Source: Heterodontus francisci
Lineage: Eukaryota
Direction: 5' to 3'
Length of the DNA: 64,000 nt
Assembly (NCBI RefSeq): GCF_036365525.1
Contig: NC_090371.1
Span: 36,315,387-36,379,386, forward strand
Positions 22,804 to 61,454 of the stretch are shown one piece after another. The notes beneath the pieces were generated by a model. That model was not told the origin of the DNA. It was given only the letters and a program-made list of their open reading frames with translations, and did not search any database. The first letter of the stretch is position 1; every line of letters begins with the position of its first letter. The position numbers and the translations under genes were made by a program.

Positions 22804-22843
22804 ATGAAACTTCTCGGATTCCTCCTCGTCATCCGCCTGACAA
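22804..22843 (+). CDS. CD8A: CD8 alpha exon 1 (signal peptide MKLLGFLLVIRLT)
   Basis: Kozak-like acaccATGa, hydrophobic leader, phase-1 donor A|gtaagt at 22844; joins in frame to the V exon. Confidence 0.85.
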
Positions 22844-23454
22844 GTAAGTAATAATGCTCAATATTTTGCCTTCTCTTATTCGTCTCGCAAAGATTATGAT
22901 AATTTGACTATCTTAAAGAGGGGGTAGGAAAATACATAAATTTCGAACTGGCAGGAGACGGGCGGCAGATTACAACCGCGGCTTCACAAACAAAAGCAAT
23001 TGTCTTTACATCGATTCGTGCCGTTACTGTAATTCGAGATTTCAGTGGGTTAGCTATATTTTGTTAGATTTAGACTATCCGCTAATTTCCCTGCATCTTG
23101 TTGCAAAGGAGTTCCTGAAAGGGAAAAGACTTGCAGGACTGTGGGTTTAGAGCAAAGCAGTGGGATTATTTGGACAGCTCTTTTAAAGGGTGGAACGTCC
23201 TCCTGTTCTGGATGATTCTATTGCATTACCCTGGAAAATTCCATTCGTTGATAAATTATGTGGGGATGGGATTTCAACGCTGGCCTGGGAACAGAGCAAG
23301 TGTGAAAGATGGTCAGTTTACATCAACTTGGTAACGCTTGATATTAACATGCTTCGTGCTTTACAGTGTGAGTCTCACGGTGACGGATTCGTTGCTTTTC
23401 ATCCAAAAACTCCACACGAGGACTCGCTAATGTTAATGTTTGTATGCTTCGCAG

Positions 23455-23772
23455 CCATCGCTGAACAGGCTCCCTCGCTAAGAGTGGTGAAGAAAGGCCA
23501 GGACATTCCCTTGGACTGCTCACTGAAAGCAGACGAGGGAATCTATTGGTTCCGGCAGGGGAAAAGTTCGGGTCCGGTATTCCTGCTGTATGTAACTGGC
23601 GCGGGTAAAATAAAACCTGACAATATCACGAAATATAAAGCTACAAAGTCATTCAGGAAAGTTTCTCTGATGGTTAAAAATGTCATGACGGAAGATTCGG
23701 GGAACTACTATTGTCTCATGGTGAAGAACATGGCCATGATATTTGGAAAAACCATCGATTTGAAACTAGAAG
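23455..23772 (+). CDS. CD8A: CD8 alpha exon 2 (IgV domain, TIAEQAPSLRVV...YYCLMVKNMAMIFGKTIDLKLE)
   Basis: 318 nt phase 1-1 exon (tcgcag| ... G|gtcagt); B-strand Cys (LDC), YWFRQ, PVFLLY, DSGNYYC and N..MIFG, typical of CD8 alpha V domains; lies within ORF 23190..23780. Confidence 0.9.
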
Positions 23773-23978
23773 GTCAGTGAAGATCTGGGGAAAATGTCAT
23801 TGAGTAAAAAACAAAACCGTGTCCTTTTTAATCCATTAAATTATACCCTTAATACTTAATATTTCACACATATTGAATAGGTGGTATAAATTAACTCAAC
23901 CTCTATATTTATTTTTCACTAACTATCACATTGTTAATTTTATGTACCTTTTTTAATTTACTTATTAAATAAATGCAG

Positions 23979-24083
23979 AACCTAAAAGCACACCAAAGCC
24001 AACGACCATCCCCATTACAACGAAAGCAAAATCAACCACACCGGAGAACAAAGAGACGACTCAGTGCCATTCGACTAAAAGAG
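23979..24083 (+). CDS. CD8A: CD8 alpha exon 3 (stalk EPKSTPKPTTIPITTKAKSTTPENKETTQCHSTKR)
   Basis: 105 nt phase 1-1 exon; Thr/Pro/Lys-rich O-glycosylation-type stalk with one Cys. Confidence 0.88.
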
Positions 24084-25030
24084 GTACAAACCAGGCTTTC
24101 ATCACACTGAATCCCTCGGTCATATTAATTCATATTAAAACCTCTCCGGAGGCAAAATTCATGTTCCAGTTATTATGATACTGTGATTGCTATGTCCCGC
24201 GCCATCCTAAATGTCTTTGTGAAGATTCCTATGTAGATTGTTAGAACCATAGAAGTTGGAGGAGGAGGTCATTCGGACCATCATGGCTAGGCTTGTTCTT
24301 TCCCAGAGCAGCCCAAAATTAATTCCACTGCCTCATTTTTACACTCTCCGGGACCCTGTATCTTCAGTTTCACTTTTTTAAAAATCAATTTACCCTAAAA
24401 TATGCAACGACGCATGTCTGAAGCATTCTCTGTGACAAAACATTCCCAACAACCACTGAGGAAAGAGATTTCCCCCAACTGCTTCACTCTTAGTAACATT
24501 TTTATTTTCTTATTCATTCGTGGGATGTGGGTGTCGTTGGCATTTAATGCCCGACCTCCATTGCCCTGCCGCCTTCTCGAACCGACGGCCTTCTACACCG
24601 ACTTGCCAACCAGAGAAACTAGTTTCTCCCTCGTTATTCTAGCAACATTTTTTAATACCGATACATTCCGTCTAACCTTCTCTCTCCAAGTATCCCAAAT
24701 CCCTCATCACAACTCTAGCTTGCCAAATCTGACATCATCTTGGGGAATGCGCGCTGCAGCGGGTAGAGGAAATCCTCTCAAACCCAGTCAGCATGTTGCT
24801 ACTTAGAAGGATCACAGTCATTCTTACCCCCCGCGTTAGCATCAATATTCAATAACTTACTGGCGAAGTAGGAGCGGAGATTCTCTCTATGGGAAATGGG
24901 TAACACTGTTCTATACAAATGGCTTTACCATTTCAATCCATAGCCTCACCCAATGTGTATGGGCTGGGGCTGAAGAACGCTTGGGTTGTTTGCCTTCCTT
25001 TATATGTTAATTGAAGATTTGATTGAAATC

Positions 25031-25111
25031 TTCTTCTTTCTTTTGGGCCTCCTTATCTCGAGAGACAATGGATACGCGCCTGGAGGTGGTCAGTGGTTTG
25101 TGAAGCAGCGC
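25031..25111 (-). mobile_element. RTE 3' stub
   Basis: Reverse complement of about 16520-16594. Confidence 0.8.
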
Positions 25112-26352
25112 TTCACAATCTACTTGGTTAAAACTGGTGTAAGCTTCCTACGGGAGGCATTTTAACCAAGTGTCTAAGTTTATTTTAAAGGGGTTTATGA
25201 TTTCCCCAAAATAGCCGTATATGAATTTAAGTTTGGGCTTTTGCTGGCGGCGCCCTATGCACAGGAAGTGATAGAAATCGGCGATTTGTCAGCACAACCT
25301 TCGTCGCTAACCCTCGGGATCTCGGCGTGACCGTGGAGCCAAATTCGTTAAGTCTCCGGTTTACCCGGAGCAGCGCGCTAAGGGTAAAGCTGAGCGGAAT
25401 TCCAAGCCTGACCGGCATTTTCACCCCCAGGGGTGGGGGGAGGGAGGTTTGATTCCAACCGAGAGAGGTGATAGGAATATAGGGACTGACAGTAAAGTGT
25501 CTCCCTGGTCAGTATATCCATATATCCTGGCGCCTGGTCCTTCGGAAACTTCGGTCAGCAAGTCGTGTTTCAGCAAAGTAGGGAGAAGTCTTCCAGATAA
25601 TAAACAGAACATAAACATCGTCCTAATATTTTAATACTGCAACTGCCTGCTCCGCTTCAAGACAAGAAAACGTTGTTACATTTGAGAGGTGTGAGCTTTG
25701 CCATCCTTTTAACACAAATGACAAGATCTGCACACCACACGCAGTAACGAGCAACTGAATTCCAGTCTGATCGGATTTCCCTGTCTGACATAATTAAATA
25801 CTTAGAGGTTTAAAGGGAGCGATTTTAAATATAAAACTTTAATCGAAATCATAGATTATTGGGGAGGGGGGGTTAAAACGTTTCTAAATGGTGCAGGAAA
25901 TTATTACAAAGGTTTCTGTGCTAAATCATCAACAGCAGTTGCTTTATCAGGGTAATAGTGAGAAAGTGTGAGCTTTCCCGTTAGATTTGCTGTTTTTTGG
26001 TTGCTTTAATATGTGTAGTTATATAATTGCTCCGGGTGATTTTTGCTCACAGCCGAAAGCAAAATATAAAATGTGTTTGTTGTATATATTCTACTTCGGA
26101 TTCTCTACATTGTTCTCCTTCTAAATGTGCATATTTAGATATATCCTGCCTGTGCTACATATTTTATAATTTTAGATGTTGAATATTAAAAGTTGGACAA
26201 TTCCCAATGCATATTCGATTTATTGAAATACATTTTAATTTTGTCTCAAAAAAATCGTTTGAATTAGCCACAAGTGTAAATTTTCAATACATTTGTCTTG
26301 ACATTCACGTAATAAATTAATTATATATGTTTCCTGTTTTTATATATTTTAG

Positions 26353-26463
26353 CGATCAAGGACGATAAAATGTCTTGCCACATGATCATCTGGGCTCCTC
26401 TGACGGGCGCTGCCTTTCTGTTGTTGTTAGCACTGATAATCGTCTCCACCGTTTATTGCAGAA
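26353..26463 (+). CDS. CD8A: CD8 alpha exon 4 (TM, AIKDDKMSCHMIIWAPLTGAAFLLLLALIIVSTVYCR)
   Basis: 111 nt phase 1-1 exon; juxtamembrane Cys, IWAPL-G motif characteristic of CD8 alpha TM, YC at the cytoplasmic border. Confidence 0.92.
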
Positions 26464-26570
26464 GTATATCGTTCACATTCTTCTCTCTCTTTCTTCTAAT
26501 ACATGGAGTTTTAACTTTCTAAATCAGTATGGTTGAAATGCACACAAACTAAGGTGCTTCTGTTTTCTAG

Positions 26571-26610
26571 GACCACGTCGGAGACGCTGTCAGCATCAAT
26601 TCAGAAAGAG
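26571..26610 (+). CDS. CD8A: CD8 alpha exon 5 (cytoplasmic RPRRRRCQHQFRK)
   Basis: ttttctag| acceptor, AG|gtgggt donor (phase 1-2); basic run plus the CxH motif, the fish-type LCK-binding motif. Confidence 0.9.
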
Positions 26611-26769
26611 GTGGGTATGACATTTGGTTCGTTCAAAAAAGACATTCAGGTTCGAAACGAGACAAAGCCGAGCACCTAGTCACATATCCCAGAAATATCT
26701 CAATGTTTCAGGATTATGAATCACTTTGAAGTGTAATGACTGTTGTTAAGTAGACAAAGTTCATATGTG

Positions 26770-27240
26770 TTGCACACTGCTGCCACTGTGCATCAGTGGT
26801 GGAGGGAGTGAATGTTGAAGATGATGGATGGGGTGCCAATCAAGTGGGCTGCTTTGTCCTTGGATGGTGTCGAACTTCTTGAGTGTTGTTGGCGCTGCAC
26901 TCATCCAGGCAAGTGAAGAATATTCCATCAAACTCCTGACTTGTGCCTTGTAGATGGTAGACAGGCTTTGGGGAGTCAGGTGATGAGTTACTCAGTATTC
27001 CCAGCCTTTACCCTGCTCTTGTAGTCACAGTATTTATATTGCTGGTCTAGTTCTGCTTCTGGTCAATGGTAATGCTTCTGGTAACCCCCAGGATGTTGAT
27101 GGTGGGGGATTCAGCGATGGTAATGCCATTGAATCTTAAGAGGAGATTGTTAGATTCTCTCTTGTTGGAGATGGTCATTGCCTGGCAGTTGTGTGACACG
27201 AATGTTACTTGCCACTTATCAGGCCAAGCCTGAACATTGC
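26770..27240 (-). mobile_element. Fragment of the tRNA-headed LINE family
   Basis: Similar to about 53080-53530. Confidence 0.8.
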
Positions 27241-27249
27241 AAAAAATAG

Positions 27250-27910
27250 TCCAGCTGGGGACGAACTATTGTTTTATATAGGCTTAGCATAACTTCCCGG
27301 TTTTTTGTACTCTATGGCTCTATTTATAAAGCCCAGAATCTCATCTGATTTTTTCACTGCTTTGTTAAGCTGTCCTGCCATTTACAAAGCTTTGTGCACA
27401 ATCACCCCCATGTTTTCTTCTCTTGCAGAGCCTCGAAAATCATTCCATTTCGCATGCATTGTCTTTCCTCATTCTTCCTACCTCACGCCTTTCCGCATTG
27501 AATTTCATCTGCCATGTGTCTGCCCATTCTTTCATCCTCTCCAAGTCATTACCATCTTCCTCGCTGTTTACACTTACAAGTTTCCTGTCACTTTCAAATT
27601 TTGTGCCATGTATCCCCAAGTCTAAGTCATTAATATATTTCAAAAACAGCAATCCGTCACCCTAGTACTGAGTTTGAGAAACTCCACTGTATATCTCCCT
27701 CCAGTCCAAAAATCAATCCTCTGTTTTCTGTCCCTTAGTCAATTTTGTATCCATGCTGCTACTGCCCCTTTTATCTCACGGGCTTTAACATTTGCTAAAA
27801 AGCAAATAAAGTAGTACTTTATCAAACTCCTTTTTGAAAGCCCATATACACATTGTCAACTGCACTGCCCTCATCCAATTTCTGTTACCTCATCAAAAAA
27901 TTCCACCAAT
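27250..27910 (-). mobile_element. Degraded CR1 RT fragment
   Basis: YINDLDLG...WADTWQMKFN (ORF 27440..27652 -). Confidence 0.75.
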
Positions 27911-28104
27911 GAAGAACTAGTAGTTAAGGGACGACAGGTATGGTATTTAAACACTTCAAGTTTGTAAGAAGAGAAGTTGCAAGGGGATGAGGAGTTGTTT
28001 TGAGGTCTTGGATAGAATAGGCAAGACTAGGAGTTTGTACCATAAGTCTTTTTGTCAACAGGATAAAGATACAGGAAGTGGGGAAGCATGCAGGTCCTGT
28101 TTTA

Positions 28105-28500
28105 TCAGCACCCATCCAACACCTTAAACATTCACCCCCTCCAGCATGGGCACAAGGTGGCTGCAGTGTGCACCATCTACAAGATGCTCTTCAGCAACTC
28201 ACTAAGGCTTCTATGGCAGCATCTTCCAATCCCACAGCTTCTACTGCCTAGAAGGTCAAGGGCAGCAGGCACGTGGGAACACACCACCTGCAAATTCCTC
28301 TCCAAGTCATGCACCTTCCTGACCTGGAAATATATCAACATTCCTTCATCAGCACTGGGTCAAAATCTTGGAACTCCATACCTAACAGGATACCACATGG
28401 ATAGCAACAGTTCAAGAAGGTGGCTCACCACCACTTACTCAAGGGCAACTGAAGATGGATAATGGAGATGATGACGCCCACATCCCATAAATAAATAAAT
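28105..28500 (+). mobile_element. 3' fragment of the tRNA-headed LINE family
   Basis: VAAVCTIYKM; tail gacgcccacatcccat(aaat)n. Confidence 0.8.
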
Positions 28501-31172
28501 ATTTTTTTAAATTAAAATTTATACAGAGCTCAGGCTGAAGAGTGTCTGATTAAATGGCATTGACTTGACACATTACATATACTTGACACATTAACTCTTT
28601 CTCTCCCCACAGATGCTGTTTGACTTGCTGATAATTTCCACCATTTCCTGTTTTCATTAAGGAAAATGTCTTACTTGGTTTACAGTTATGAGAGCTCCCT
28701 CACTACACCACATTGGTGTAAAAAGGAATCTTAAAAAGTAGCTTCAAATTCCCTGGAAAAAAATATCCTCCACTAATGCAATGTGAAGTAGCACATTTTA
28801 GGAAAAAAGAACAATACCTGCAGAACTCTTAACAAAGGGGAGAAACAAAGAAATCTTGGATACAGATACAATAACCTTTAAAAGTGGATTTGCTAGATTT
28901 TATTTATGAGGGCTTTGAATATACAAACAAGAAAATGTTAAGACATTGGTTTGGCTGTAGTTTGGAGTCTCTGCAGTTTTGGGCATCCAGTTGTAGGAAG
29001 GATATCAGAAACACTGAAAGATTATAGTGAAGATTCACTAGAATGTTATCAATAATGAAAGGCCACAATTATGAAGAAAGGTTTGAAAATTTGTGCCTTT
29101 CTAACTGGAGCTGACAAGGTTAAAAGAAGAATCTAATAGAGATTTTTATTATTATACATATTTTGAGGGAATTAAAAATGAAAAATTGCTTTCATTGGCT
29201 AGTTGGTAACATAGGAGTAAAGACACAGGATTATCAAGAACAATGAGAAAAGCTAAAGAAAATGTTTTCACACAACAGATTATTACAATAAATGCTTTGC
29301 CAATTGTTCAAAAGGCAGTTGGATATGTATTCCAGAAGGGGGCGGGGGGAAGGATATGGAGAAAGGGCAGGAAAGTGGTATTAGCACAGATAAATCTAAC
29401 TGAAGAGTATAGCATAGTCTGAGCCCTCAGTAAAGTAATCATTCTTTCCTATCTTTAGATTTATTTTAAGAGCACAAAAATGCACAGAACAAGAACAGCA
29501 TTTGGTTCATCATTCCATAAACCACATACCATCCAATTTATCCTGTGTCAATCCCATTTAAACTTTGGAGGGAACATGCTACATACTGCTGTCTATTCCA
29601 AAAATAATCAAACAAAACTCCAAAATATTCATTCATGCTCACAACTCCACTGCTTAACCCTAACCATGTATGAAACCATATCTGGACCAGTCTATCCATT
29701 GTGTCCCAGATTACTATTGTTTACTTACTAAGAAATGGTGAATGCTTTGCATGACACCATGATAAAGGTCAAAGGTTGCCAGGTGCACAATTATAGCAGC
29801 AACAATTTTTCATTGTTCACTTGCTCAAAATCTTAAACCTTTGAGCATTACCTAGTTCTTAGTATTTTACTTGGAAGGGAACAATTTTTAACAATCTATC
29901 AGTTCTGAGGTTCTGGATGTGATGTGTAAAAAAAATAGAAGGAAGGCACCTCTCTACAAGGGGAGGGAGTTCATGGATTAGGCCATATTTGGTTGGGAAT
30001 GAAAGGTTATAGGGATACATACAGATTAAGATAATCAAATACTCCATGGAATGTATTGCTGAAGTCAAGAGCTGAGAAAGTGTGCCTACAGAAGGTGGTA
30101 AATCATGACTGGATTATAGAAATGTTCAAATGAATAAATATTCAGGAATTTTGCTTGATTGTCTTTGGGGATCAGATTATATTTGTCCAAAACTTTCCCT
30201 CAGATGGTCAAATTAATCAAATTTATACTAAGAGCAGGCTTGATAGGCTGATTGGGCTTTTCTTGTTCCAGACATTCTCAAGTTCATATTCTATTGCTAA
30301 ACTGCTGTTGCAAGTCTTTTAGCAGTGCACTAAAGAATAGTCTTGGCAGAGACCAGAAGACATCTGTGGTGCATTAACAAAGAAAACAAAAAGCAGGATT
30401 AATATTATTTTCACAAATATTCTCAAACACACTTCGATTGGCTCTATTTTGATTTGCAAAAATACCAACTGAAGAACAACACATTTCCAGTAAGTTTATA
30501 CTAACCAAGATGATTCCTTCATTTGAGTTCACATTTTTATAAACTGAAAACTATATAAGATTAATTCAGTCTACACCCAAATTTACTCAATAGTGCAGAA
30601 AACACTTACTATACTGTTCTATCTAAATATAAATCATACTAGTGCACCAATATTTAATCATTTAACAAATAACAAATTTGAGCACAGCTGTGAGGAGTTA
30701 TTTTAGTGGTTATGTAAAGGATCAGTTTAGTTTTAAATGTGTCTTTCAAGTTTTGTATTACGTAAACTAATATAAGTCACATCAGAGAATATTGAGTCAA
30801 CCAGGATTCGACCCTGGAATGTGAACAATATTTTAAATGCACAGCAATGATACTCTCTGTAAAACAATTTGTTCTGATATTATTGTATTTCAGGGATTGA
30901 CCTGTATCAACACTTCATTCAGTTTTCAGAAAATCACTTATTTAAATGTGATGCATGTATTTAAAATACATGAAATAAGTTAGCCTCCAAATTCATCTGA
31001 CAATTTTTCTTTACTATGCCTATCTTACTGTGCATCACCAATGTTTTGCAATTTAGTTTTTTTTTGTAGGCAAGGAACATATTACTGCCTAAAGTCAGTT
31101 AAAAAACTATAATATTTTCAAGAAAAAGAAAATTGTTTTTTACTTAACATTCTTTATTCATTATTTATTCAG

Positions 31173-31218
31173 ACCAATACCTGAAGAGGTTAGCAGACCA
31201 ACAAATAGATACCATTAA
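31173..31218 (+). CDS. CD8A: CD8 alpha exon 6 coding part (RPIPEEVSRPTNRYH*)
   Basis: Pyrimidine-rich acceptor ttattcag|, phase-2 compatible; ends in RY-x-stop like tetrapod CD8A (ARYV); total CDS 660 nt = 219 aa plus stop. Confidence 0.8.
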
Positions 31219-39574: not shown

Positions 39575-40797
39575 ATCACAGAATTGTTACAGCACAGAAG
39601 GAGGCCATTCATCCCACCGTGTCTGCACTAGCTCTCTGAATGAGCAATTCACCTACTGCCACTCCCCTGCCTTCTCCCTGTGACCCTGTATATTCTTCCT
39701 TTTCAGATAACAGTCTAATTCTATTTTGAATGCCCTGATTGAACCTGCCTGCACCACCCTCTCAGGCAATGCATTCCAGACCTTAACCTCTCGCTGCATA
39801 AAAAACATTTTTCTCATTTCACTATTGCTTCTGTTGCCAATTACTTTCAAACTGTGTCCTCTAGTTCTCAATACATTTACAAGTGGGAACAGTTTCTCCT
39901 TATCTATTCTGTCCAGACCCTTCATGATTTTGAATACTTCTATCAAATCACTTCTCAGCCTTCTCTTCTCCAAGGAAAACAGTCCTAACCTCTCCAATCT
40001 ATCTCCATAACTAAAGTTCCTCATCCCTGGAACCATTCTTGTGAATCTTTTCTGTATTCGCTCCAGTGTCTTCACATCTTTCTTAAAGCACGGCACCCAG
40101 AACTGGATGCAATACTCCAGCTGAGGTTTATACAAGTTCAACATAACCTGTATGAAGGATACTGTATGCTTTATTAACCGCACTCTCAACCTGCCCTGCA
40201 ACCTTCAATGGCTTATGCACATATACACCTAGGTCCCTCTGCGCCTGCACCCACTTTAGAGTTTATTTCTCCGCGCTGAACTTCATCTGCCCGTTGTCTG
40301 CCCATTCCACCAACTTGTCTATGTCCTTTTGAAGTTCTACACTATCCTCCTCACAATTCACAATACTTCCAAGTTTTGTATCGTCTGCAAATTTTGAAAT
40401 TGTGCCCATTAAGATATATCAGGAAGAGCAAGCTTCCCCACACTGACCCTGGGGAACTCCGCTACAAACATTCCTCCAGCCAGAAAAACATCTGTTAACC
40501 GCTACTCTCTGTTTCCTGTCACACAGCCAATTCTGTATTCATGTTGCTATTGTCCCTTTTATTCTATGAGCTATAACTTTGCTTACAAGCCTGGTGTGTG
40601 GCACTATATCAAATGCCTTTTGGAAGTCCTTGTACGCCACATCAACAGAATTGCCCTCATCAACCCTCTCAGTTACCTCTTCAAAAAACTCCAGCAAGTC
40701 AGTCAAAAACGATTTTCCCTTAACAAATCCGTGCTGGTTTTCCTTAATTAACCCGCATTTGTCCATGTGACAAATAATTTTGTCCTGAATTATTGTT
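39575..40797 (-). mobile_element. CR1 LINE 3' portion
   Basis: ORFs 39653..40201 and 40539..40766 (-) with CR1 RT and C-terminal motifs. Confidence 0.88.
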
Positions 40798-41448
40798 TCA
40801 TAAGATCATAAGAGCTAGGAGCAGGAGTAGGCCGTCCGGCCCCTCAAGCCTGCTCCGCCATTCAATAAGATCATGGTTGATCGTTTCGTGGACTCAGATC
40901 CACTTACCCGCGCTCCCACCGTATCCCTTAATTCCTTTATTGTTCAAAAAGATATCTACCTTAGCTTTAAAGACGTTTACTGAAGAAGCGTCAACTACTT
41001 CACTGGGCAAGGAATTCCATAGATTAACAACCCTCTGGGTGAAGAAGTTCCTTCTTAATTCAGTCCTAAATCTGCTCCCTCTAATCTTGAGGCTATGCCC
41101 TCTTGTCCTAGCTTCACCTGCCAGTGGAAACATCCTCTCTACTTGTATCTTATCTATCCCCTTCATGATTTTATATGTTTCTATAAGATCCCCCCTCATT
41201 CTTCTGAACTCCAATGAATATAATCCCAATCTACTCAGTCTCTCCTCATAAGCCAACCCCCTCAACTCCGGAATCAACCTAGTGAACCTCCTCTGCACCC
41301 TCTCCAGTGCCAGTATATCCTTTCTCAAGTAAGGAGACCAAAACTGCACACAGTACTCCAGGTGCAGCCTCACCAGTACTTTATACAGCTGCAACATAAC
41401 CTCTCTGCTTTTAAACTCAATCCCTTTAGCAATGAAGGACAAAATTCC
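40798..41448 (-). mobile_element. CR1 LINE 3' end (different subfamily)
   Basis: ORF 40894..41532 -: HLEYCVQFWSP...FFTQRVVNLWNSLP. Confidence 0.9.
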
Positions 41449-41586
41449 AAAATAAAAGCAAAATACTGCGGATGCTGGAAATCTGAAACAAAAACAAGAA
41501 ATGCTGGATTCACTCAGCAGGTCTGGCAGCATCTGTGGAAAGAGAAGCAGAGTTAACGTTTCGGGTCAGTGACCCTTCTTCGGAAT
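41449..41586 (-). mobile_element. Penelope-derived hammerhead repeat
   Basis: Minus strand CCGAAGA-a-gggtc(act)gaccc-GAAAcgttaac. Confidence 0.85.
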
Positions 41587-41742
41587 TGGATTTGTCGTAA
41601 TTTGATAACGTTAGATCTGATATAGATAACCCCCCAGGGTCCCTGCGTTGCTGGTTACGAGTTGTTCGCTTTTATTTGACACAAGGCGCTTGGATATAAC
41701 ACACACTAGAACATAATGCTCACAAAACGCTGTTCCTTTCAG

Positions 41743-41850
41743 TTCCAGAGAGACTGAAAACGACTTCGCCGCCTCCGACTACAAAAGGCCGCAAAATCTA
41801 TCGTTACAAGTACCCGATTACGCGTGGCAAAAAGAAAGCGAATAATAATG
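41743..41850 (+). CDS. Second CD8-type stalk exon (VPERLKTTSPPPTTKGRKIYRYKYPITRGKKKANNN)
   Basis: gttcctttcag| acceptor, G|gtaaga donor, 108 nt phase 1-1, open frame, Thr/Pro then basic stalk; in frame with the TM exon at 46608. Confidence 0.75.
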
Positions 41851-46607: not shown

Positions 46608-46706
46608 GGTATGTCTGTAACTGGACTATTTGGGGATCATTGACAGGCTGCAACCTCCTTTTATTGATCTCTATCGTTTTTATCGTCATCCATTTTAGGA
46701 ATAAGA
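46608..46706 (+). CDS. Second CD8-type TM exon (GYVCNWTIWGSLTGCNLLLLISIVFIVIHFRNK)
   Basis: tttttccag| acceptor, A|gtaagt donor, 99 nt phase 1-1; C-x3-IW-x2-LTG pattern parallels CD8A exon 4. Confidence 0.88.
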
Positions 46707-46803
46707 GTAAGTCCGGATATTAATCTCTCATGTGTTGATATATTTCATGAGTCGTCACAGTATTTATTTGTTCATGAGCTCCCTGTTTCTCTTCCCTTTC
46801 TAG

Positions 46804-46840
46804 AGTCCCGGAGGCGATGTCCCCACCAGTTTCGGAAAAG
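46804..46840 (+). CDS. Second CD8-type cytoplasmic exon (KSRRRCPHQFRK)
   Basis: Follows a 97-nt intron (107 nt in CD8A); phase 1-2; RRRCxHQFRK shared with CD8A exon 5. Confidence 0.88.
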
Positions 46841-49727
46841 GTAAAGGTAAATTTTATATGGCTTTAAGGGAGGTTGGCATTGAGGGGTAACAATGGTTCT
46901 TCTGAACAAATACGGAATCGACGTTGTATCACTTCAATGGTATATGCTAACAGAACTCTACCCTTTTCCCTAAGGACAGGTGGGGAGAGTCTCCTCCACT
47001 ATTGCCCCTAACTCTCCGAGTTAGATTTAATTCCGTTGAGTCTCGGGTTGCTGATATTAATGAGCACTAACTGGCAGAGAAACGCCCACACATTGATGTT
47101 TTAAATCCGAATAGCGATATAAATTAGTGAGAACAGTGAAAGCATCTGACCATCTCCTATAGTACTTTGAAATAATCGGAGCCACCTTTTTTAGTTCACG
47201 GATAATAAGCCAAGGGCAGTAACTTAAACATTTGTTCAGAAAGACGAAGGTAAACCGAGTTCATGCGTTCAATAGGACAGGATACTGTCAACGACATCAT
47301 TAGTATTGAGAAACAAGTTGATACTCGGTCAAACTACATTGTGCCCGTGTTAAAGTTTGTCTAGGTCCCATCTTAACTTTCGAACTGTCCTATTAAAAAC
47401 CTATTACAACCAATTAATTAAGTGTAGTCACTGTTGTAATGTAAGAAACAGCCAATTTGCCACAAACACCAATGTGACAATGACCAGATAATCTGGTTGA
47501 GGATAAATATTCAGCCAGGATACTGGGGACATACTTTGAGCCTCAAAGTTGTGGGACTGAAGCTTCACTCTAAGTCTTGAGCCCATTATCTATACTGCAC
47601 TTCAGTCCTGAGAGAGCTCTCCATTACTTTTTGGATCTGATGTTCAACCATGTTTAAGTGGATCTCATGGCACAAATTTTTAAGAGGAACAGGGATTTTT
47701 TCCTTCGCCCAACACCAAAAAGAAGGAATTGCATTTATATAGAACCTTTCATGACCTCAGGACGGCCCAAAATGCTTTGCAGTCAATGTAGTACTTTTGA
47801 AGTGTAGTCACTGTAGTAATGTAGGAAATGAGACTGCCAATTTGCACACAGCAAGCTCCCACAAACAGCAATGTGACAATGACCAGTTAATGTCTTTTTC
47901 GCGATGTCAGTTAAGGGATAAATATTGGCCAGAACCAGCAAAAATAAATGTGGGAATACATTCAATTTAGTTCTGTTTGCGAAATCTTGCTGTGAACAAA
48001 ATGCCTGCCATAGCTGTCTACAAATAATGGTGACTAAGTTTCAAAAGTAATTTATTAGATAGTATGTGCTTTGACACATCCTGAGTATGTGGCATGGTTG
48101 CTAAATAAACGTTAAGTGTTTCGCCTTTTGTTTTTCTCTTTCTCAGCTTGCTTTCTTTGCTCCTTGCTGTCTCACGTCTGCCCTGCAGCTAACCTGATAT
48201 TACTAATACACTGTATGTAGCTTGACACACTGAACGTTAGAACCCAGTTAGAACTGCATCAAGACAGTTAATTACATTCATCATCAATGTATAACAAGGC
48301 ATCTTTGGTTCTTATAATGCCTGGTCTATGGCCAGATGGTGGATGTGAGATTAATTGAGATTTACAAGACTGACATTGATTGACTTTTATTAGGTAAGGA
48401 TCTCATGGGATAAGAAGCAGAAGCAGGTAAATGACGTTGAGGTACAGATCAGCAATGATCTAATTAAATGGCAGAACTGGTTCAAGGGTCTGAATGACTT
48501 ACTCCTCTTATGTTCCCATAGAAATACAGTGTGAACAGGATGGCAACCATTCAAACATAAACAATGTGGGATATAAAATTCTAAAGATATCTTCAAGAGT
48601 ATACTTGCTTTACCTTTGCGAATAGGGCTAAACATTTCAGAATCTTTCCTCATGAGTTTAAGTGAGTTTGATGGAGTCCAAGATTCAACAAATTGTGCAT
48701 GATCATTAGGAACAATGTTTGCTCAGCTAAATGGCTGTTTTTCATTCCTTATTTATTTATTCATTTATTTACTTACAGCAGGAGATAATAGCTAGGTTGT
48801 GAGGAACAGTTATTGTACTCCTTAGATTATTATTCTTATTAACTATTGCCTTCTGTCATAAAAGTCTGGAACTCATCCAGCTGTAGGTTTCTCCATTCCT
48901 GCAATCTATAGGGTTTAAAACCCAAGCCCACTTCTGTCCAAGTCTTTCACTCTGCACTATGGGCCTTGGCCCTCTGTACGAATCAAATCATAGCAGACAC
49001 ACTTTTGTGGTGGAGTTTTCTATAATTAAGAGAATCCTAAGCTTTGTTGTTATCACAGGAAACTTTATTAAATACAATAAATGCTGCACTAGTGCTGCAG
49101 TCTATGTAAAAAAAACAACAACCTTTTGTTTATTTTTACAAATTAGGTTAACATTACCTGAGCTCGATATATGTTCTAATATTTGCAAAGGTTTATCAAA
49201 GTATTTTACAATAAAATAAAATACAAATCCATTGATGCCCTTTACAATATTAACCCCTTGAAAATACAGTTATGCTTTCAAATGCTTTATTAAATTAAAT
49301 GTAGCCTTTCATACCGATTAAACCATCATATTAATTCGTTAACTCAACAGCCGTGGTTTCTGGAAAGGCTTGAGTAAAGCACTTTGCACTAGTCGTGAAA
49401 CAATGCCTTCTGTCTGCCCGAGTATTTCTCGATATTCATTATATTGATGATTCATTGCCAAAGCTTATCATCTTATGAGCAGTGAAACCCACCCATACAA
49501 GAGGTGCCTTTCTAATGGGAGGGACAGTGGTATTCAAGAGTTTCTTGAAATCACTCAAATCACCTTCTGATTTTATTTTTAAAGGGCATGAAGGAAGAAT
49601 AAGGAAGTGTAATTATAATGATATGTCAACCTGCACATGAGGAGCACTATCTATATATATAATACATGTATGTATTTATATATATAAATATAAAATATAT
49701 GTTATTGATGTTCTTGTTATAATAATC

Positions 49728-50633: not shown

Positions 50634-50772
50634 TAAAATAAAAGCAAAATACTGCAGATGCTGGAAATCTGAAATAAAAACAGAAAGTGCTGGAAATACT
50701 CAGCAGGTCAGGAAGCATCTGTGGAGAGAAAAGCAGAGTTAACGTTTCAGGTTTGTGACCTTTCATCAGAAC
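50634..50772 (-). mobile_element. Penelope-derived hammerhead repeat
   Basis: Minus strand gtt-CTGATGA-a-aggtc(aca)aacct-GAAAcgttaac (one stem II mismatch). Confidence 0.8.
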
Positions 50773-52720: not shown

Positions 52721-55700
52721 TTTTTTTTTTATTCATTCATGGGATGTGGGCGTCACTGGCTATGCCAGCATTTATTGCTCATCCCTAATTGCCCTTGAGA
52801 AGGTGGTGGTGAGCTGCCTTCTTGAACTGCTGCAGTCCATGTGAGGTAGGTACACCCACAGTGCTGTTAGGAAGGGAGTTCCAGGATTTTGACCCAACGA
52901 CAGTGAAGGAACGGCGATATAGTTCCAAGTCAGGATGGTGTGTGACTTGGACGGGAACTTGCAGGTGGTGATGTTCCCATGCATCTGCTGCTCTTGTCCT
53001 TCGAGGTGGTAGAGGTCGCGGGTTTGGAAGGTGCTGTCGAAGGAGCCTTGGTACATTGCTGCAGTGCATCTTGTAGATGGTACACACTGCTGCCACTGTG
53101 CGTCGGTGGTGGAGGGAGTGAATGTTTGTAGATGGGGTGCCAATCAAGCGAGATGCTTTGTTCTGGATGGTATCGAGCATCTTGAATGTTGTTGAAGCTG
53201 CACCCATCCAGGCAAGTGGAGAGTATTCCATCACACTCCTGACTTGTGCCTTGTCGATGGTGGACAGGCTTTGGGGAGTCAGGAGGTGAGTTACTTGCCA
53301 CAGGATTCCTAGCCTCTGACCTGCTCTTGTAGCCACGGTATTTATATGACTACTCCAGTTCAGTTTCTGGTCAATGGTAGCCCCTAGGATGTTGATAGTG
53401 GGGGATTCAGCGATGGTAATGCCATTGAAAGTCAAGGGGAGATGATTAGATTCTCTCTTGTTGGAGGTGGTCATTGCCTGGCACTTGTGCGGCACAAATG
53501 TTACTTGCCACCTATCAGCCCAAGCCTGGATATTCTCTAGGTCTTGCTGCATTTCTACATGGACTGCTTCAGTATTTGAGGAGTAGCGAATGGTGCTGAA
53601 CATTGTGCAATCATCAGCGAACATCCCCACTTCTGACATTATGATTGAAGGAAGGTCATTGATGAAGCAGCTGAAGATGGTTGGGCCTAGGACACTACCC
53701 TGAGGAACTCCTGCAGTGATGTCCTGGAGCTCAGATGATTGACCTCCAACAACTACAGTCATCTTCCTTTGCGCTAGGTATGACTCCAACCAACAGAGAG
53801 TTTTCCCCCTGATTCCCATTGACCTCAGTTTTGCTGGGGCCCCTTGGTGCCATACTTGGTCAAATGCTGCCTGGATGTCTAGTGCAGTCACTCTCACCTC
53901 ACCTCTTGAGTTCAGTTCTTTTGTCCATGTTTGAACCAAGACTGTAATGAGGTCAGGAGCTGAGTGGCCCTGGCGGAACCCAAACTGAGCATCACTGAGC
54001 AGGTTATTGTTAAGCAAGTGCCGCTTGATAGCACTGTCGATGACACCTTCCATCACTTTACTGATGATTGAGAGTAGACTGATGGGGCGGTAATTGGCCG
54101 TGTTGGACTTGTCCTGCTTTTTGTATACAGGACATACCTGGGCAATTTCCACATTGCAGGGTAGATGCCAGTGTTGTCGCTGTACTGGAACAGCTTGGCT
54201 AGGGGCGCAGCAAGTTCTGGAGCACAGGTCTTCAGTACTATTGCTAGAATATTGTCAGGACCCATAGCCTTTGCAGTATCCAGTGCCTTCAGTCGTTTCT
54301 TGATATCACGTGGAGTGAATCGAATTGGCTGAAGTCCAGCATCTGTGATGCTGGGGACTTCAGAAGGGGGCTGAGATGAATCATCAACTCGGCACTTCTG
54401 GCTGAAGATTGTTGCAAATGCTTCTGCCTTATCTTTCGCACTAATTTGCTGGGCTCCCCCATCATTGAGGATGGGGATATTTGTGGAGCCACCTCCTCCA
54501 GTTAGTTGTTTAATTGTCCACCACCATTCACGACTGGATGTGGCAGGACTGCAGAGCTTAGATCTGATCCGTTGGTTATGGGATCGCTTAGCTCTGTCGA
54601 TTGCATGCTGCTTATGCAGTTTGGCACACAGATAGTCCTGGGTTGTACCTTCACTGGGTTGACACCTCATTTTGAGGTATGCCTGGTGCTGCTCCTGGCA
54701 TGCCCTCCTGCATTCTTCACTGAACCAGGGTTGGTCTCCTGGCTTGATGGTAATGGTCGAGTGGGGAATATGCCAGGCCATGAGGTTACAGATTGTGGTT
54801 GAGTACAATTCTGCTGCTGCTGATGGCCCACAGCGCCTCATGGATGCCCAATTTTGCATTGCTAGATCTGTTCGTAATCTATCCCATTTAGCACAGTGAT
54901 AGTGCCACACAACACGATGGACGGTATCCTCAATGTGAAGGCGGGACTTCGTTTCCACAAGGACTGTGCGGTGGTCACTCCTACCAATACAGTCATGGAC
55001 AGAAGCATCTGCGGCAGGCAGATTGGTGAGGACAAGGTCAAGTATGTTTTTCCCTCGTGTTGGTTCCCCCACCACCTGCCGCAGACCCAGTCTAGCAGCT
55101 ACGTCCTTTATTACTTGGCCAGCTCGGTCAGTAGCGGTGCTACCGAGATACTCTTGGTGATGGACATTGAAGTCCCTCACCCAGAGTACATTTTGTGCCC
55201 TTGCCACCCTCAGTGCATCCTCCAAGTGGTGTTCAACATGGAGGAGTACTGACTCATCAGCTGAGGGAGGGCGGTAGGTGGTAATCAGTAGGAGGTTACC
55301 TTGCCCATGTTTGACCTGATGCCATGAGACTTCATGGGGTCCGGAGTCGATGTTGAGGACTCCCAGGGCAACTCCCTCCCTCCTGTAGACCACTGTCCCG
55401 CCACCTTTACTGGGTCTGTCCTGCCGGTGGGACAGAACATACCCAGGGATAGTGATTGCAGTGTCTGGGACATTGTCTGTCAGGTACGATTCCGTGAGTA
55501 TGACTATGTCAGGCTGTTGCTTGACTAGTCTGTGGGACAGCTCTCCCAACTTTGGCACAAGCCTCCAGATGTTAGTGAGGAGGACTTTGCAGGGTCGACA
55601 GGGCTGGGTTTGCCGTTGTCGTTTCCAGTGCCTAGGTCGATGCCGGGTGGTCCATCCAGTTTCATTCCTTTTCATTGACTTCATAGAGGTTATGTACAAC

Positions 55701-56016
55701 TGAGTGGCTTGCTAGGCCATTTCAGAGGGCATGTAAGAGTTAACCACATTGCTGTGGGTCTGGAGTCACATGTAGGCCAGACCAGGTAAGGACAGCAGAT
55801 TTCCTTCCCTGAAGGACATTAGTGAACTAGATGGGTTTTTACAACAATCAACAATGGTTTCATGGCCATCATTAGACTAGCTTTTAATTCCAGATTTATT
55901 AATTAAATTCAAATTCCACCTTCTGCTGTGGTGGGATTCTGACCCCTGTCTCCAGATCAATACCCTGGGTCTCTGGGTTACTGGTCCAGTGATAATACCA
56001 CTACGCCACCGCCTCC
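52721..56016 (-). mobile_element. Single-ORF APE-RT LINE (CR1/L2 group) with a tRNA-like 5' head; one frameshift near 54150
   Basis: ORF 54053..55699 (LTES, DFNVHH, SDH endonuclease) and ORF 52785..54152 (PQGSVLGP, FADD); no ORF1; polyA/(tgaa)n tail. Confidence 0.9.
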
Positions 56017-56965
56017 TGATGGACTTCATCCTAGGGTGTTAAAAGAAGTGGCTAGTGAGATAGTTGATGCATTAGTTTTAATTTTCCAAAATTCTCTAGA
56101 TTCGGGGAAGGTTCCATTAGATTGGAAAATAGCAAGTGTTACTCCTTTATTCAAAAAGGGAGGGAGACAGAAAGCAGGAAACTACAGGCCAGTTAGCTTA
56201 ACATCTGTCTTAGGGAAAATGTTAGAAGCTATTATCAAAGATGTTAAAGCAGGGCATTTAGAAAAATGCAAGGTAATCAGGCAGAGTCAACATGGTTTTG
56301 CGAAAGAGAAATCATGTTTAACCAATTTATTGGAGATCTTTGAGGGAGTTACATGTGCTGTGGATAAAGGGGATGTCTTGTACTTAGATTTCCAAAAGGC
56401 ATTTGATAAGGTGCCACATCAAAGGTTATTGCAGAAAATAAAAGCTCAGGGTGTATGTGGTAACATATTGGCATGGATAGAAGATTGGCAGCTAACAGGA
56501 AACAGAGAGTAGGCATAAACGGGTCATTTTCTGGTAGGCAAGATGTAACGAGTGGTGTGTCACAGGGACCTGTGCTGGAGCCTCAACTTTTTGCAATTTA
56601 TGTAAATGACTTAGATGAAGGGACCGAAGGTATGGTTGCTAAATTTGCTGATGACACAAAGATAGGTAAGAAAGTAACTTATGAAGAGGACATAAGGGGG
56701 CTACAAAGGGATATAGGTAGGTTAATTGAGTGGACAAAGACCTGGCAAATGGAGTATAATGTGGAAAATTGTGAAACTGTCCACTTTGGCAGGAAGAATA
56801 AAAAAGAAGCATATTATCTAAATGGTGAGAGATTGCATAGCTCTGAGATGCAGAGGGATCTGGGTGCCCTAGTGCATGAATTGTGAAAGGTTAGTATGTA
56901 GGTACAGCACGTAATTAGGAAAGCTAATAGAATGTTATCGTTTATAGCGAGGGGAATTGAATACA

Positions 56966-59900
56966 AAGAACAAAGAACAAAGAACAAAGAAAATTACAGA
57001 ACAGGAACAGGCCCTTCGGCCCTCCAAGCCTGCGCCGATCCAGATCCTCTATCTAAACCTGTCGCCTATTTTCTAAGGGTCTGTATCTCTTTGCTTCCTG
57101 CCCATTCATGTATCTGTCTAGATACATCTTAAAAGACGCTATCGTGCCCGCGTCTACCACCTCCGCTGGCAACGCGTTCCAGGCACCCACCACCCTCTGC
57201 GTAAAGAACTTTCCATGCATATCCCCCCTAAACTTTTCCCCTCTCACTTTGAACTCGTGACCCCTAGTAATTGAATCCCCCACTCTGGGAAAAAGCCTCT
57301 TGCTATCCACCCTGTCTATACCTCTCATGATTTTGTACACCTCAATCAGGTCCCCCCTCAACCTCCGTCTTTCTAATGAAAATAATCCTAATCTACTCAA
57401 CCTCTCTTCATAGCTAGCGCCCTCCATACCAGGCAACATCCTGGTGAACCTCCTCTGCACCCTCTCCAAAGCATCTACATCCTTTTGGTAATGTGGCGAC
57501 CAGAACTGCACGCAGTATTCCAAATGTGGCCGAACCAAAGTCTGATACAACTGTAACATGACCTGCCAACCCTTGTACTCAATACCCCGTCCGATGAAGG
57601 AAAGCATGGCGTATGCCTTCTTGACCACTCTATTGACCTGTGGCAACCTTCAGGGAACAATGGACCTGAACACCCAAATCTCTCTGTACATCAATTTTCC
57701 CCAGCACTTTTCCATTTACTGTATAGTTCACTCTTGAATTGGATCTTCCAAAATACATCACCTCGCATTTGCCCTGATTGAACTCCAGCTGCCATTTCTC
57801 TGCCCAACTCTCCAATCTATCTATATTCTTCTGTATTCTCTGACAGTCCCCTTCACTATCTGCTACTCCACCAATCTTAGTGTCATCTGCAAACTTGCTA
57901 ATCAGACCACCTATACTTTCCTCCAAATCATTTATGTATATCACAAACAACAGTGGTCCCAGCACAGATCCCTGTGGAACACCACTGGTCACACTTCTCC
58001 ATTTTGAGAAACTCCCTTCCACTGCTACTCTCTGTCTCCTGTTGCCCAGCCAGTTCTTTATCCATCTAGCTAGTACACCCTGGATCCCATGCAACTTCAC
58101 TTTCTCCATCAGCCTACCATGGGGAACCTTATCAAACGCCTTACTGAAGTCCATGTATATGACATCTACAGCCTTCCCTCATCAATCAACTTTGTCACTT
58201 CCTCAAAGAATTCTATTAAGTTGGTAAGACATGACCTTCCCTGCACAAAACCATGTTGCCTATCACTGATAAGCCCATTTTCTTCCAAATGGGAATAGAT
58301 CCTATCCCTCAGTATCTTCTCCAGCAGCTTCCCTACCACTGACGTCAGGCTCACCGGTCTATAATTACCTGGATTATCCCTGCTACCCTTCTTAAACAAG
58401 AGGACAACATTAGCAATTCTCCAGTCCTCCGGGACCTCACCCGTGTTTAAGGATGCTGCAAAGATATCTGTTAAGGCCCCAGCTATTTCCTCTCTCGCTT
58501 CCCTCAGTAATAAATAGATCCCATCCGGACCTGGGGACTTGTCCACCTTAATGCCTTTTGGAATACCCAACACTTCCTCCCTCCTTATGCCGACTTGACC
58601 TGGAGTGAGCAAACATCTATCCCTAACCTCAACATCCTTCATGTCCCTCTCCTCGGTGAATACCGATGCAAAGTACTCGTTTAGAATCTCACCCATTTTC
58701 TCTGACTCCACACATAATTTTCCTCCTTTGTCCTTGAGTGGGCCAATCCTTTCTCAAGTTACCCTCTTGCTCCTTATATATGAATAAAAGGCTTTGAGAT
58801 TTTCCTTAACCCTGTTTGCTAAAGATATTTCATGACCCCTTTTAGCCCTCTTAATTCCTCGTTTCAGATTGGTCCTACATTCCCGATATTCTTCCAAAGC
58901 TTCGTCTTTCTTCAGCCTCCTAGACCTTATGTATGCTTCCTTTTTCCTCTTAGCTAGTTTCACAATTTCACCTGTCATCCATGGTTCCCTAATCTTGCCA
59001 TTTCTATCCCTCATTTTCACAGGAACATGTCTCTCCTGCACGCTAATCAACCTCTCTTTAAAAGCCTCCCACATATCAAATGTGGATTTATCTTCAAACA
59101 GCTGCTCCCAATCTACATTCCCCAGCTCCTGCCGAATTTTGGTATAGTTGGCCTTCCCCCAATTTAGCACTCTTCCTTTCGGACCACTCTCGTCTTTGTC
59201 CATGAGTATTCTAAAACTTACGGAATTGTGATCACTATTCCCAAAGTAGTCCCCTACTGAAACTTCAACCACCTGGCCGGGCTCATTCCCCAACACCAGG
59301 TCCAGTATGGCCCCTTCCCGAGTTGGACTATTTACATACTGCTCTAGAAAACCCTCCTGGATGCTCCTTACAAATTCTGCTCCATCTAGACCTCTAACAC
59401 TAAGTGAATCCCAGTCAATGTTGGGAAAATTAAAATCTCCTATCACCACCACCCTGTTGCTCCTACATCTTTCCATAATCTGTTTACATATTTGTACCTC
59501 TATTTCACACTCGCTGTTGGGAGGCCTGTAGTACAGCCCCAACATTGTTACCGCACCCTTCCTATTTCTGAGTTCTGCCCATATTGCCTCACTGCTCGAG
59601 TCCTCCATAGTGCCCTCCTTCAGCACAGCTGTGATATCCTCTTTGACCAGTAATGCAACTCCTCCACCCCTTTTACCTCCCTCTCTATCCCGCCTGAAGC
59701 ATCGATATCCTGGGATATTTAGTTGCCAATCGTGCCCTTCACTCAACCAAGTCTCAGTAATAGCAATAACATCATACTCCCAGGTACTAATCCAAGCCCT
59801 AAGTTCATCTGCCTTACCTACTGCACTTCTTGCATTAAAACAAATGCACCTCAGACCACCAGGCCCTTTGCGTTCATCATCTGCTCCCTGCCTACTTTTC

Positions 59901-60283
59901 CCCTTAGTCACACTGACTTCATTATCTAGTTCCTCACAGGCTTTCGTTACTACCTCCTTACTGTCCACTGACCTCCTCATTTGGTTCCCATCCCCCTGCC
60001 ACATTAGTTTAAACCCTCCCCAACAGCGTTAGCAAAAGCATCCCCAAGGAAATTGGTTCCAGTCCGGCCCAGGTGTAGACCGTCCAATTTGTAATAGTCC
60101 CACCTCCCCCAGAACCGGTCCCAATGTCCCAAAAATCTGAGCCCCTCCCTCCTGCACCATCTCTCAAGCCACGCATTCAGCCTGACTATTCTTTCATTTC
60201 TACTCTGACTATCCCGTGGCACTGGTAGCAATCCTGAGATTACTATCTCTGAGGTCCTACTTTTTAACTTGGCTCCTAACTCC
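56966..60283 (-). mobile_element. Young CR1 LINE (ORF1 end, ORF2, 3' tail), same family as 4056-7902
   Basis: ORFs 58754..60004, 58166..58711, 57630..58154 and 57053..57646 are nearly identical in protein sequence to the 5470-7902 ORF2 where they overlap. Confidence 0.95.
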
Positions 60284-61426
60284 CATAAGTAAGGAGGTTA
60301 TTCTTCAGCTATACAGGTCATTGGTGAGACCACATCTGGAGTACTGTGTACAGTATTGGTCTCCTTATTTAAGGAAGGATGTAAATGCTTTGGAGGCCGT
60401 ACAGAGAAGGTTTACTGGACTAATACCTGGAATGGGCGGGCTGTCTTATGAGGAAAGATTGGACAGGCTAGGCTTGTATCTGCTGGAATTTAGAAGAGTA
60501 AGAGGTGACTTGATTGAAACATATAAGATCCTGAGAGGTCTTGACAGGATGGATGTGGAAAGGATGTTTCTCCTTGTGGGAGAATCTAGAACTAGGGGTC
60601 ACTGTTTAAAAATAAGGGATCGCCCATTTAAGACAGAGATGAGGAGAAATTTTTTCTCTCTGACGGTCGTGAGTCTTTGGAATTCTCTTCCTCAAAAGGT
60701 GGTGGAAGCAGAATCTTTGAATATTTTTAAGGCAGAGGTGGATAGATTCTTGATAAGCAAGGGGGTGGAAGGTTATCGGGGGGTAGGTGGAAATGTGGAG
60801 TAATCAGTTCAGCCCTGAACGTATTGAATGGCGGAGCTTGCTCGAAGGGCCGAGTGGCCTACTCCTGCTCCTAATTGGTATGTTTGTATATTTGTATGTT
60901 GATTTCACTATCACATGCATGAATATTTGAAACAATAAAATATTCTATGAAATGAAAAATATTTTGACTAATACAGGAACTGGAAAACATTACTTTTGAG
61001 AATTCCTCTCCGTAAAAAAGTAAGTGCTATCGAGATATAATTACTCAGACTGAAACCAATCAGGTTACAATTACAAACCACATGTACTACTCATTGAATT
61101 CTCTGTTTCCAAACTCTCTCGGTTTGGATATTGGAAATGACATTTTCTCATTACTGCGAAGAAGATTACCAAGACTGCATTTCTGGTTTGTAAAGGCAGA
61201 TAAATGACGCAGTAAAGGATAGTGTTTAACTATGTTCTCAGGGTATTCCAAATCACTTTGCAATCAACAAATTACTTTTGACATGGTCAGTGGGTCAGAT
61301 TGGTACTACCTAGGTCAACTCTAATACCTACAGTACAGGCAAGGCATCAACATAATAATATCATAGCCTGATATTTTTCAAATTAACAGAATCCGGAAAA
61401 AGAATTGTATTATGCATTCTCTTCAG

Positions 61427-61454
61427 GACCATAAACAACAACGAACCAGCCTAG
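61427..61454 (+). CDS. Candidate last exon of the second CD8 cassette (RTINNNEPA*)
   Basis: cattctcttcag| acceptor, phase-2 compatible; the frame continues **PRY*, placing RY at the same offset as in CD8A exon 6; 14.6 kb from the previous exon. Confidence 0.4.

Follow-up and report, generated by a model that had tools for sequence, protein, structure and literature searches.

The question raised by the 64-kb Heterodontus francisci (horn shark) window, which is the whole stretch of DNA that was analysed on both strands, is how a CD8 chain is made from an exon series that has no variable (V) exon of its own in sight. The window is the CD8 locus of this species. A CD8A gene is followed by a second series of CD8-type exons (the cassette) for a stalk, a transmembrane (TM) segment and a tail, and an earlier note on the same DNA had offered three readings of it, namely (a) one gene making two CD8 chains with a shared V exon, (b) a CD8B-like gene with its V exon far upstream and CD8A between, and (c) a headless duplicate. 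On homology, the three cassette exons (41743-41850, 46608-46706, 46804-46844) make up exons 3-5 of a CD8B copy in the horn shark, and the cassette is of an already known kind, the standard back half of shark CD8B; it is transcribed and correctly spliced. With a probability of roughly 0.8, it is such a back half whose CD8 beta-type leader and V exons lie outside the window, and the part of the cassette messenger RNA (mRNA) upstream of the stalk is not the CD8A V exon; a recently duplicated or rearranged locus is the favoured setting.

Identity of the second exon series

A profile search, in which the horn shark CD8A protein XP_067885175 and the three cassette exons were entered as separate, unjoined alignment rows, returned CD8A orthologues and five elasmobranch CD8 beta proteins, those of cloudy catshark (GCB70529), Narcine (XP_069779152), white shark (XP_041055403), bamboo shark and Leucoraja (XP_055504646). 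Aligned onto the window with tblastn, the five CD8 beta proteins fell on 41742-41852 (stalk), 46607-46711 (TM) and 46803-46841 (tail), with identities of 53-83 % over the TM exon and 91-100 % over the tail exon, and the stalk exon was 57-68 % identical to the CD8 beta of cloudy catshark, white shark, bamboo shark and Leucoraja. The TM segments of CD8A and the cassette are only 39 % identical to each other and their stalks are not alignable. When the 32-residue TM exon was searched with phmmer in a set of 1.84 billion representatives, there were 0 matches, and the catshark and white shark CD8 beta proteins, which are 73-83 % identical there, were missed as well; the blank is taken for an artefact of a short or hydrophobic query and not for absence. 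The idea that the cassette is a second 3' end evolved for CD8A was ruled out by the orthology of stalk, TM and tail to CD8 beta.

The stalk exon begins at 41743 with TTCCAGAGAG..., all frames of the cassette are open, and the intron phases (1, 1, 1, 2) are those of CD8A, which ends at 31218 on the same strand as the CD8B stalk that starts at 41743; the cassette itself lacks a Met. The tail exon translates over 46804-46840 as (K)SRRRCPHQFRK(R), with CPH at 46818-46826. What the earlier note had described, a second intact CD8-type series with consensus acceptors and donors, open frames and CD8A-like phases, was seen again, and its joints are GT..AG in the RNA contigs presented below. The note was right to call the cassette intact and functional-looking; it had not recognised an ordinary CD8B orthologue, the stalk, TM and tail matching shark and ray CD8 beta. 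Its argument that a cassette well diverged from CD8A yet intact cannot be a dead copy fails, since the divergence is that of the ancient CD8A/CD8B split. A Cys-free basic stalk and a tail with a CxH motif are ordinary features of elasmobranch CD8 beta.

Published sequences agree with this assignment. Small-spotted catshark CD8b is given as YMCNWAIWGSLV-ACNLLLLISIVAIVIHRRKRS / SRRRCQHQFRKR (excerpt YMCNWAIWGSLV-ACNLLLLISIVAIVIH...) in Suppl. 7 of PMC10768021, where catshark and nurse shark CD8b share the motifs of the cassette and have no coding exon after the tail; in the same paper CxH is regarded as ancestral in both CD8 chains of fishes. The catshark CD8 beta complementary DNA (cDNA), obtained by rapid amplification of cDNA ends, encodes 215 amino acids (aa), among them an immunoglobulin superfamily V domain of its own and a CXH tail; its identity to CD8 alpha is 25.8 % (PMC10140343).

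The tail cores of CD8A (RRRCQHQFRKR, 26579-26611) and CD8B (RRRCPHQFRKR, 46809-46841) share 23 of 33 DNA letters, and of their 11 codons 7 differ synonymously and 1 non-synonymously, which points to an unusually tight constraint at the protein level over the LCK-binding stretch as a whole, in CD8A and CD8B alike. Because the codon differences are mostly synonymous, CD8A and CD8B appear to be ancient paralogues under strong purifying selection, with no recent copying between them. The predicted CD8B chain would have a Thr/Pro-rich, basic stalk of the O-glycosylation type, and the membrane-proximal Cys in its YVC is a likely partner, judging from the family, of the Cys in the MSCH of CD8A. Its tail CPH, together with the CxxC of LCK, would clasp a zinc ion if LCK is bound as in other members of the family; peptides of trout CD8 alpha have been shown to bind in a zinc-dependent manner, in work cited in PMC10768021.

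Some database entries for these genes look like naming or model errors. The white shark entry named 'cd8b' (XP_041055862.1) is orthologous to CD8A, with 62 % identity to the horn shark protein and a CD8A-type tail, and the real CD8 beta of this species is LOC121284201. The Cetorhinus 'putative immune-type receptor 10a' and one Callorhinchus entry look like CD8A with retained intron sequence.

Transcripts of the cassette and their 3' end

Contigs of four out of seven small sequencing runs were compared with positions 41300-47200. Runs X1 and X2 derive from one sample of organism A and were presumed to be RNA, two intron-removing joints showing that spliced transcripts are present; runs X3 and X4 (organism B) had only repeats in common with the interval. 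The X1 contig (873 nucleotides (nt), depth 592) and the X2 contig (985 nt, depth 24) both pass from 41741-41849 to 46607-46706 and on to 46804, with GT..AG introns cut at 41850/46608 and 46706/46804, and their joints equal the predicted exon borders to the base. They run a further 349 nt (X1) and 450 nt (X2) 5' of 41741 in sequence that departs from 41300-41740, which means that the stalk acceptor is used and is joined to one or more upstream exons.

The expressed sequence is abundant and 99.6 % identical to the cassette exons. At 41806 the spliced CD8B contigs have G where the window has A, and A is also carried by a further, 92 % identical contig that is described below; the A/G difference is one of alleles or of paralogous copies, and might mark the copy that is expressed. 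Exons near-identical to cassette 2 of the earlier note are found in transcripts, all three being carried by contigs of two runs, and its reading (c), a dead headless duplicate, is disfavoured by the expression and splicing of a near-identical sequence, which leaves room for a young redundant duplicate.

The CD8B reading frame has AGG (R) at 46839-46841 and TAA at 46842-46844, so that the protein ends ...CPHQFRKR and then stops, and all five CD8 beta orthologues (5/5) end at ...FRKR. A strong GT donor at 46841 (AAAAG/GTAAAG) overlaps the stop codon, a second one lies 6 nt further on at 46847 (AAAG/GTAAAT), and the protein ends at FRKR with or without use of the first. The earlier note had instead joined 46840 to a terminal exon at 61427-61454 (forward strand; R-TINNNEPA, then stop) for a product of 209 aa. 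The RNA contig matches the genome over the 41 letters of 46804-46844, and the bin depth agrees (29 nt past 46815). Since the contig follows the genome for 4 nt past 46840, while the junction from 46840 to 61427 (GACCAT...) fits only one further letter, the 61427 exon is unsupported; with the in-frame TAA, the contig and the orthologue ends all against it, it was rejected for the main mRNA and would be at most a minor alternative. Isoform X1 of white shark CD8 beta was the only sequence that splices on to a few extra residues after FRKR. The transcript departs from the genome near 46844 for about 275-285 nt, taken to be a 3' UTR exon, and a scan downstream of 46850 for an acceptor followed by GTAA gave 11 candidates, 0 of them with a convincing polypyrimidine tract or poly(A) signal.

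Source of the variable domain and layout of the locus

Only the segment at 23455-23772, the V exon of CD8A, is V-like in the window. Strict and relaxed C..W..YxC scans of stop-free segments recovered this segment alone, tblastn of CD8A and the five CD8 beta proteins at E <= 20-50 found only the CD8A V, to which the CD8 beta V domains are 25-29 % identical, and a scan of the window for the hallmark motifs of the CD8 beta leader and V found none. On this point the earlier note, which had reported no second leader or immunoglobulin V (IgV) exon, was upheld by all of these approaches. It had also named an assembly gap between 31221 and 41743 as something that would count against its reading, and there is no run of N in the 64 kb.

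By length, either kind of front half could precede the stalk, since the 131 aa that precede VPER in a CD8 beta-type chain need 394 coding nt and the CD8A leader and V need 358 nt, both of which fit 349-450 nt; the upstream 350-450 nt would be enough for a 5' untranslated region (UTR), a leader and a V exon. Comparison favours the CD8 beta kind. Among three shark and two ray orders, CD8 beta shows 42-59 % identity over leader and V, against 24-30 % to those of horn shark CD8A, and a separate CD8 beta V has been kept in the cDNA-verified catshark (PMC10140343) and nurse shark (PMC10768021) genes. Loss of this V in Heterodontus alone would be exceptional.

The assemblies point the same way. In nurse shark thymus CD8A and CD8B are co-expressed, at 470 and 190 transcripts per million (PMC10768021). 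If the V were shared with a co-expressed CD8A mRNA, a fork in the de Bruijn graph would be expected, with the contig stopping about 30 nt before the junction; the contigs of both runs continue unbroken for hundreds of bases past the V/stalk junction. Among proteins of 108-345 aa, no horn shark protein with the CD8A V and another C-terminus was found, and none of 13 CD8A orthologues is a shared-V isoform, all having the CD8A-type stalk, TM and tail. Directly before TTCC the contig reads AG, which fits the ..GAAG of CD8A and also a GTA-G end read as ..VVTV/V.

Several points weigh against placing a CD8 beta-type V outside the window. The upstream 350-450 nt are known by length only, and the upstream exon shares its final ..AG with the CD8A V exon, an ending that occurs in about half of all exons. 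The fork argument assumes that CD8A is expressed in X1 and X2. The protein collection contains no CD8 beta protein of 120-383 aa from the horn shark, which is surprising if a complete, normal CD8B had been annotated; this weighs little, because CD8 beta is also missing for most sharks in which CD8A was found. Self-comparison of the window, too, found no long repeat of at least 98 % identity, only repeats at the level of transposable elements (TEs) and one 2.7-kb inverted pair.

The evidence for duplication comes from two other sequences. A second horn shark CD8A-like RefSeq protein, XP_067885189.1, is identical to XP_067885175.1 at 218 of 219 positions (K65T), bears the same name and is placed on the same 287.9-Mb record, with its gene copy outside the window. 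This near-identity suggests that the CD8 region was duplicated very recently, or that the assembly contains a false duplication. Run X2 also gave a 466-nt contig of low depth that is about 92 % identical to 41582-41850 (intron and stalk exon; 21 differences, 2 gaps) and stops at the exon donor. It cannot be unspliced pre-mRNA of the window locus, since it coexists with the main contig over the same exon and differs throughout; its coexistence with the main contig indicates that an older, diverged copy of the stalk-exon region exists, and this copy seems to be transcribed.

Along the direction of transcription the tetrapod order is CD8B, then CD8A. A tandem duplication of a unit made of CD8B exons 3-5 and CD8A, with its breakpoint in the CD8B V-stalk intron, would give the array beta leader, beta V, stalk1 TM1 tail1, CD8A1, stalk2 TM2 tail2, CD8A2, the middle of which is the order seen in the window. 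Such an event would leave the CD8 beta V upstream, and the young copy would be intact whether used or not. A headless CD8B behind CD8A is most simply the result of a recent rearrangement, whose mechanism is here reconstructed; that the cassette is a by-product of duplication, with a complete CD8B elsewhere in the array, is proposed tentatively, at somewhat less than an even chance.

Reading (b) of the earlier note places the leader and V of a single-copy CD8B before the start of the window, at a distance of over 41.7 kb from the stalk exon, with CD8A nested on the same strand in the V-stalk intron of a normal, functional gene. It is viable in that the window has no second V while the transcript has a long spliced 5' part; the side upstream of CD8A is, by the tetrapod order, where a CD8 beta V is expected, and the gene has long introns full of long interspersed nuclear elements (LINEs). 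A same-strand gene with phase-compatible sites and its own poly(A) site should, however, disturb the splicing of CD8B. The two cloudy catshark genes are separate models that follow each other directly (CD8B GCB70529, CD8A GCB70530), which suggests plain tandem genes, and no horn shark CD8B model was found in the protein collection. Nesting by itself leaves the second, 218/219 identical CD8A gene unexplained, and reading (b) is better combined with the recent duplication to which that gene points; as a strictly single-copy layout it is considered doubtful.

Slightly more doubtful is a haplotype variant or assembly defect, by which the leader and V of a normal CD8B were deleted, inverted away or misplaced here and the mRNA came from the other haplotype. 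At 41806 the assembly has A and every properly spliced RNA has G, although a single-nucleotide polymorphism, alone in 250 nt, counts for little; the near-identical pair of CD8A genes could represent a retained haplotig, and the lack of an annotated CD8 beta protein would be expected if the 5' exons could not be aligned and the cassette has no Met. The 64 kb are nevertheless free of gaps and N, and a heterozygous CD8B null allele is unlikely a priori.

Reading (a), in which the CD8A promoter, leader and V serve two chains by read-through past the CD8A poly(A) site and a splice from 23772 to 41743, is very improbable. In its favour, no V donor of compatible phase other than that of the CD8A V exon, which ends ...GATTTGAAACTAGAAG at 23772, exists in the 41.7 kb upstream, and the G/TT junction gives an in-frame Val, the same residue with which the VPER stalk of the orthologues starts. 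The AG that precedes the stalk in the contig agrees with ...GAAG, and the 452 nt upstream would fit a leader and V of 358 nt together with a UTR of 94 nt. Reading (a) is opposed by the separate CD8 beta V of every sampled shark and ray and of the catshark and nurse shark cDNAs, by the lack of the fork that would be expected at the junction in two runs, and by the lack of any recorded protein with a CD8A V and another C-terminus, from horn shark or other sharks; the spliced mRNA moreover has G at 41806 against A in the window, and may come from another allele or copy. Least probable is a headless transcript whose upstream 350-450 nt are non-coding (TE-derived or CD8A read-through) and which makes no V-bearing protein, for although the 5' part is known by length only, the cassette has no Met and LINEs lie directly upstream, the depth of 592 with three cleanly spliced exons, a 5' length that suits a leader and V, and strong conservation of the exons against their orthologues all speak against it.

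Features of the window and comparison with known systems

The upstream gene was identified from the V part of its open reading frame (ORF), which was searched alone (proteins of 108-345 aa) and had a sole match, XP_067885175.1 (219 aa, 100 % identity), named T-cell surface glycoprotein CD8 alpha chain-like and placed on the 287.9-Mb record. In tblastn with this protein, CD8A has six coding exons over 22804-31218 that match at 100 %, with AG/GT borders throughout (Table 1).

Table 1 Coding exons of CD8A, the cassette exons assigned by homology to CD8B, and the LINE fragments between them
Feature	Position	Strand	Details
CD8A leader exon	22804..22843	+	ATG at 22804; ends in phase 1; borders caccggaacacc/ATGAAA and TGACAA/gtaagt; tblastn
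CD8A IgV exon	23455..23772	+	Phase 1 at both ends; ...CTAGAAG/gt; Pfam V-set E = 3e-14
CD8A stalk exon	23979..24083	+	105 nt; tblastn
CD8A membrane-proximal Cys and TM exon	26353..26463	+	111 nt; tblastn
CD8A tail exon	26571..26610	+	40 nt; CQH (CxH) LCK motif; ends in phase 2; tblastn
CD8A last coding exon	31173..31218	+	PIPEEVSRPTNRYH, then stop; tblastn
LINE fragments	39653..41693	-	Reverse-transcriptase C-terminal ORFs; intron filled to about 50 nt before the 41743 acceptor
CD8B stalk exon	41743..41850	+	108 nt; phase 1 to phase 1; (V)PERLKTTSPPPTTKGRKIYRYKYPITRGKKKANNN(G); acceptor tgttcctttcag/, donor /gtaagact
CD8B membrane-proximal Cys and TM exon	46608..46706	+	99 nt; GYVCNWTIWGSLTGCNLLLLISIVFIVIHFRNK; in frame (G)YVCNWTIWGSLTGCNLLLLISIVFIVIHFRNK; acceptor ttgtttttccag/, donor /gtaagtcc
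CD8B tail exon	46804..46844	+	KSRRRCPHQFRKR; CxH motif; acceptor ttccctttctag/, donor /gtaaaggt; in-frame TAA at 46842-46844

The interval between CD8A and the cassette consists of LINE debris, and contig depth is very high over 41300-41693 (repeats in RNA and DNA contigs) and at exon level from 41694. A LINE ORF2 of 1069 uninterrupted aa lies at 13333-16539 on the forward strand, 6 kb upstream of CD8A, with Exo_endo_phos (E = 1e-11) and RVT_1 (E = 1e-32) domains; this LINE may still be active. An inverted pair of 2.7-kb repeats with 96.8 % identity (5197-7903 and 57577-60284) flanks the segment of about 50 kb that holds CD8A and the CD8B cassette; it is probably two young TE copies, and could serve as a substrate for inversion by recombination.

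With the assignment of the cassette to CD8B, the claim of one V exon for two CD8 chains, tempting but probably wrong, is removed. A structural oddity is left, a complete CD8A between a CD8B stalk exon and the presumed site of the CD8 beta V in a species with two near-identical CD8A genes. Elsewhere, from sharks to humans, the CD8 locus is conserved as a tandem pair. Provided that the layout is genuine and no peculiarity of one haplotype, the core T-cell co-receptor locus has undergone a very recent duplication or rearrangement, and the gene would be a natural test of splicing across a same-strand gene whose splice sites are compatible in phase. Shark gene models also show gaps and naming errors, no horn shark CD8B model having been found and the white shark 'cd8b' being CD8A-like.

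Were a shared V true after all, CD8 beta would have lost its V and would borrow the CD8A leader and V, and the heterodimer would have two identical domains for binding major histocompatibility complex class I, its chains being told apart by stalk, membrane anchor and tail alone, so that a T-cell co-receptor would be built in the manner of IgM/IgD. The IgM/IgD system resembles the window in having one V exon upstream of two phase-compatible exon sets on the same strand. It differs in that comparative evidence here favours a separate CD8 beta V, and no transcript joining 23772 to 41743 was seen among contigs that were compared with 41300-47200 only.

Shark CD8 alpha, as described in the crystal structure paper on the catshark protein ScCD8 alpha (PMC10140343), shares with the cassette its exon plan of leader, V, stalk, TM and CxH tail and its intron phases, and the tail core RRRCxHQFRKR is nearly identical in both; CD8 alpha has a further coding exon (PIPEEV...NRYH) that is absent from CD8 beta. 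Elasmobranch CD8 beta has its own leader and V, with 131 aa before VPER, whereas the window has none within 41.7 kb upstream of the stalk and a complete CD8A in that place. In all else compared, the cassette is like elasmobranch CD8 beta. The stalk starts VPER..TSPPPTTK in ScCD8 beta (MW713126/UBR18749), the nurse shark protein (KC814635/AGQ17914), GCB70529, XP_041055403, XP_069779152 and XP_055504646 as it does in the cassette, is Lys/Arg-rich and Cys-free, and is followed by the TM pattern Y.CNW.IWGSL..CNLLLLISIV.IVIH, a phase-1 intron before the tail exon and a tail that reads RRRCPHQFRKR and then stops, and in both cases the exons are linked to CD8A.

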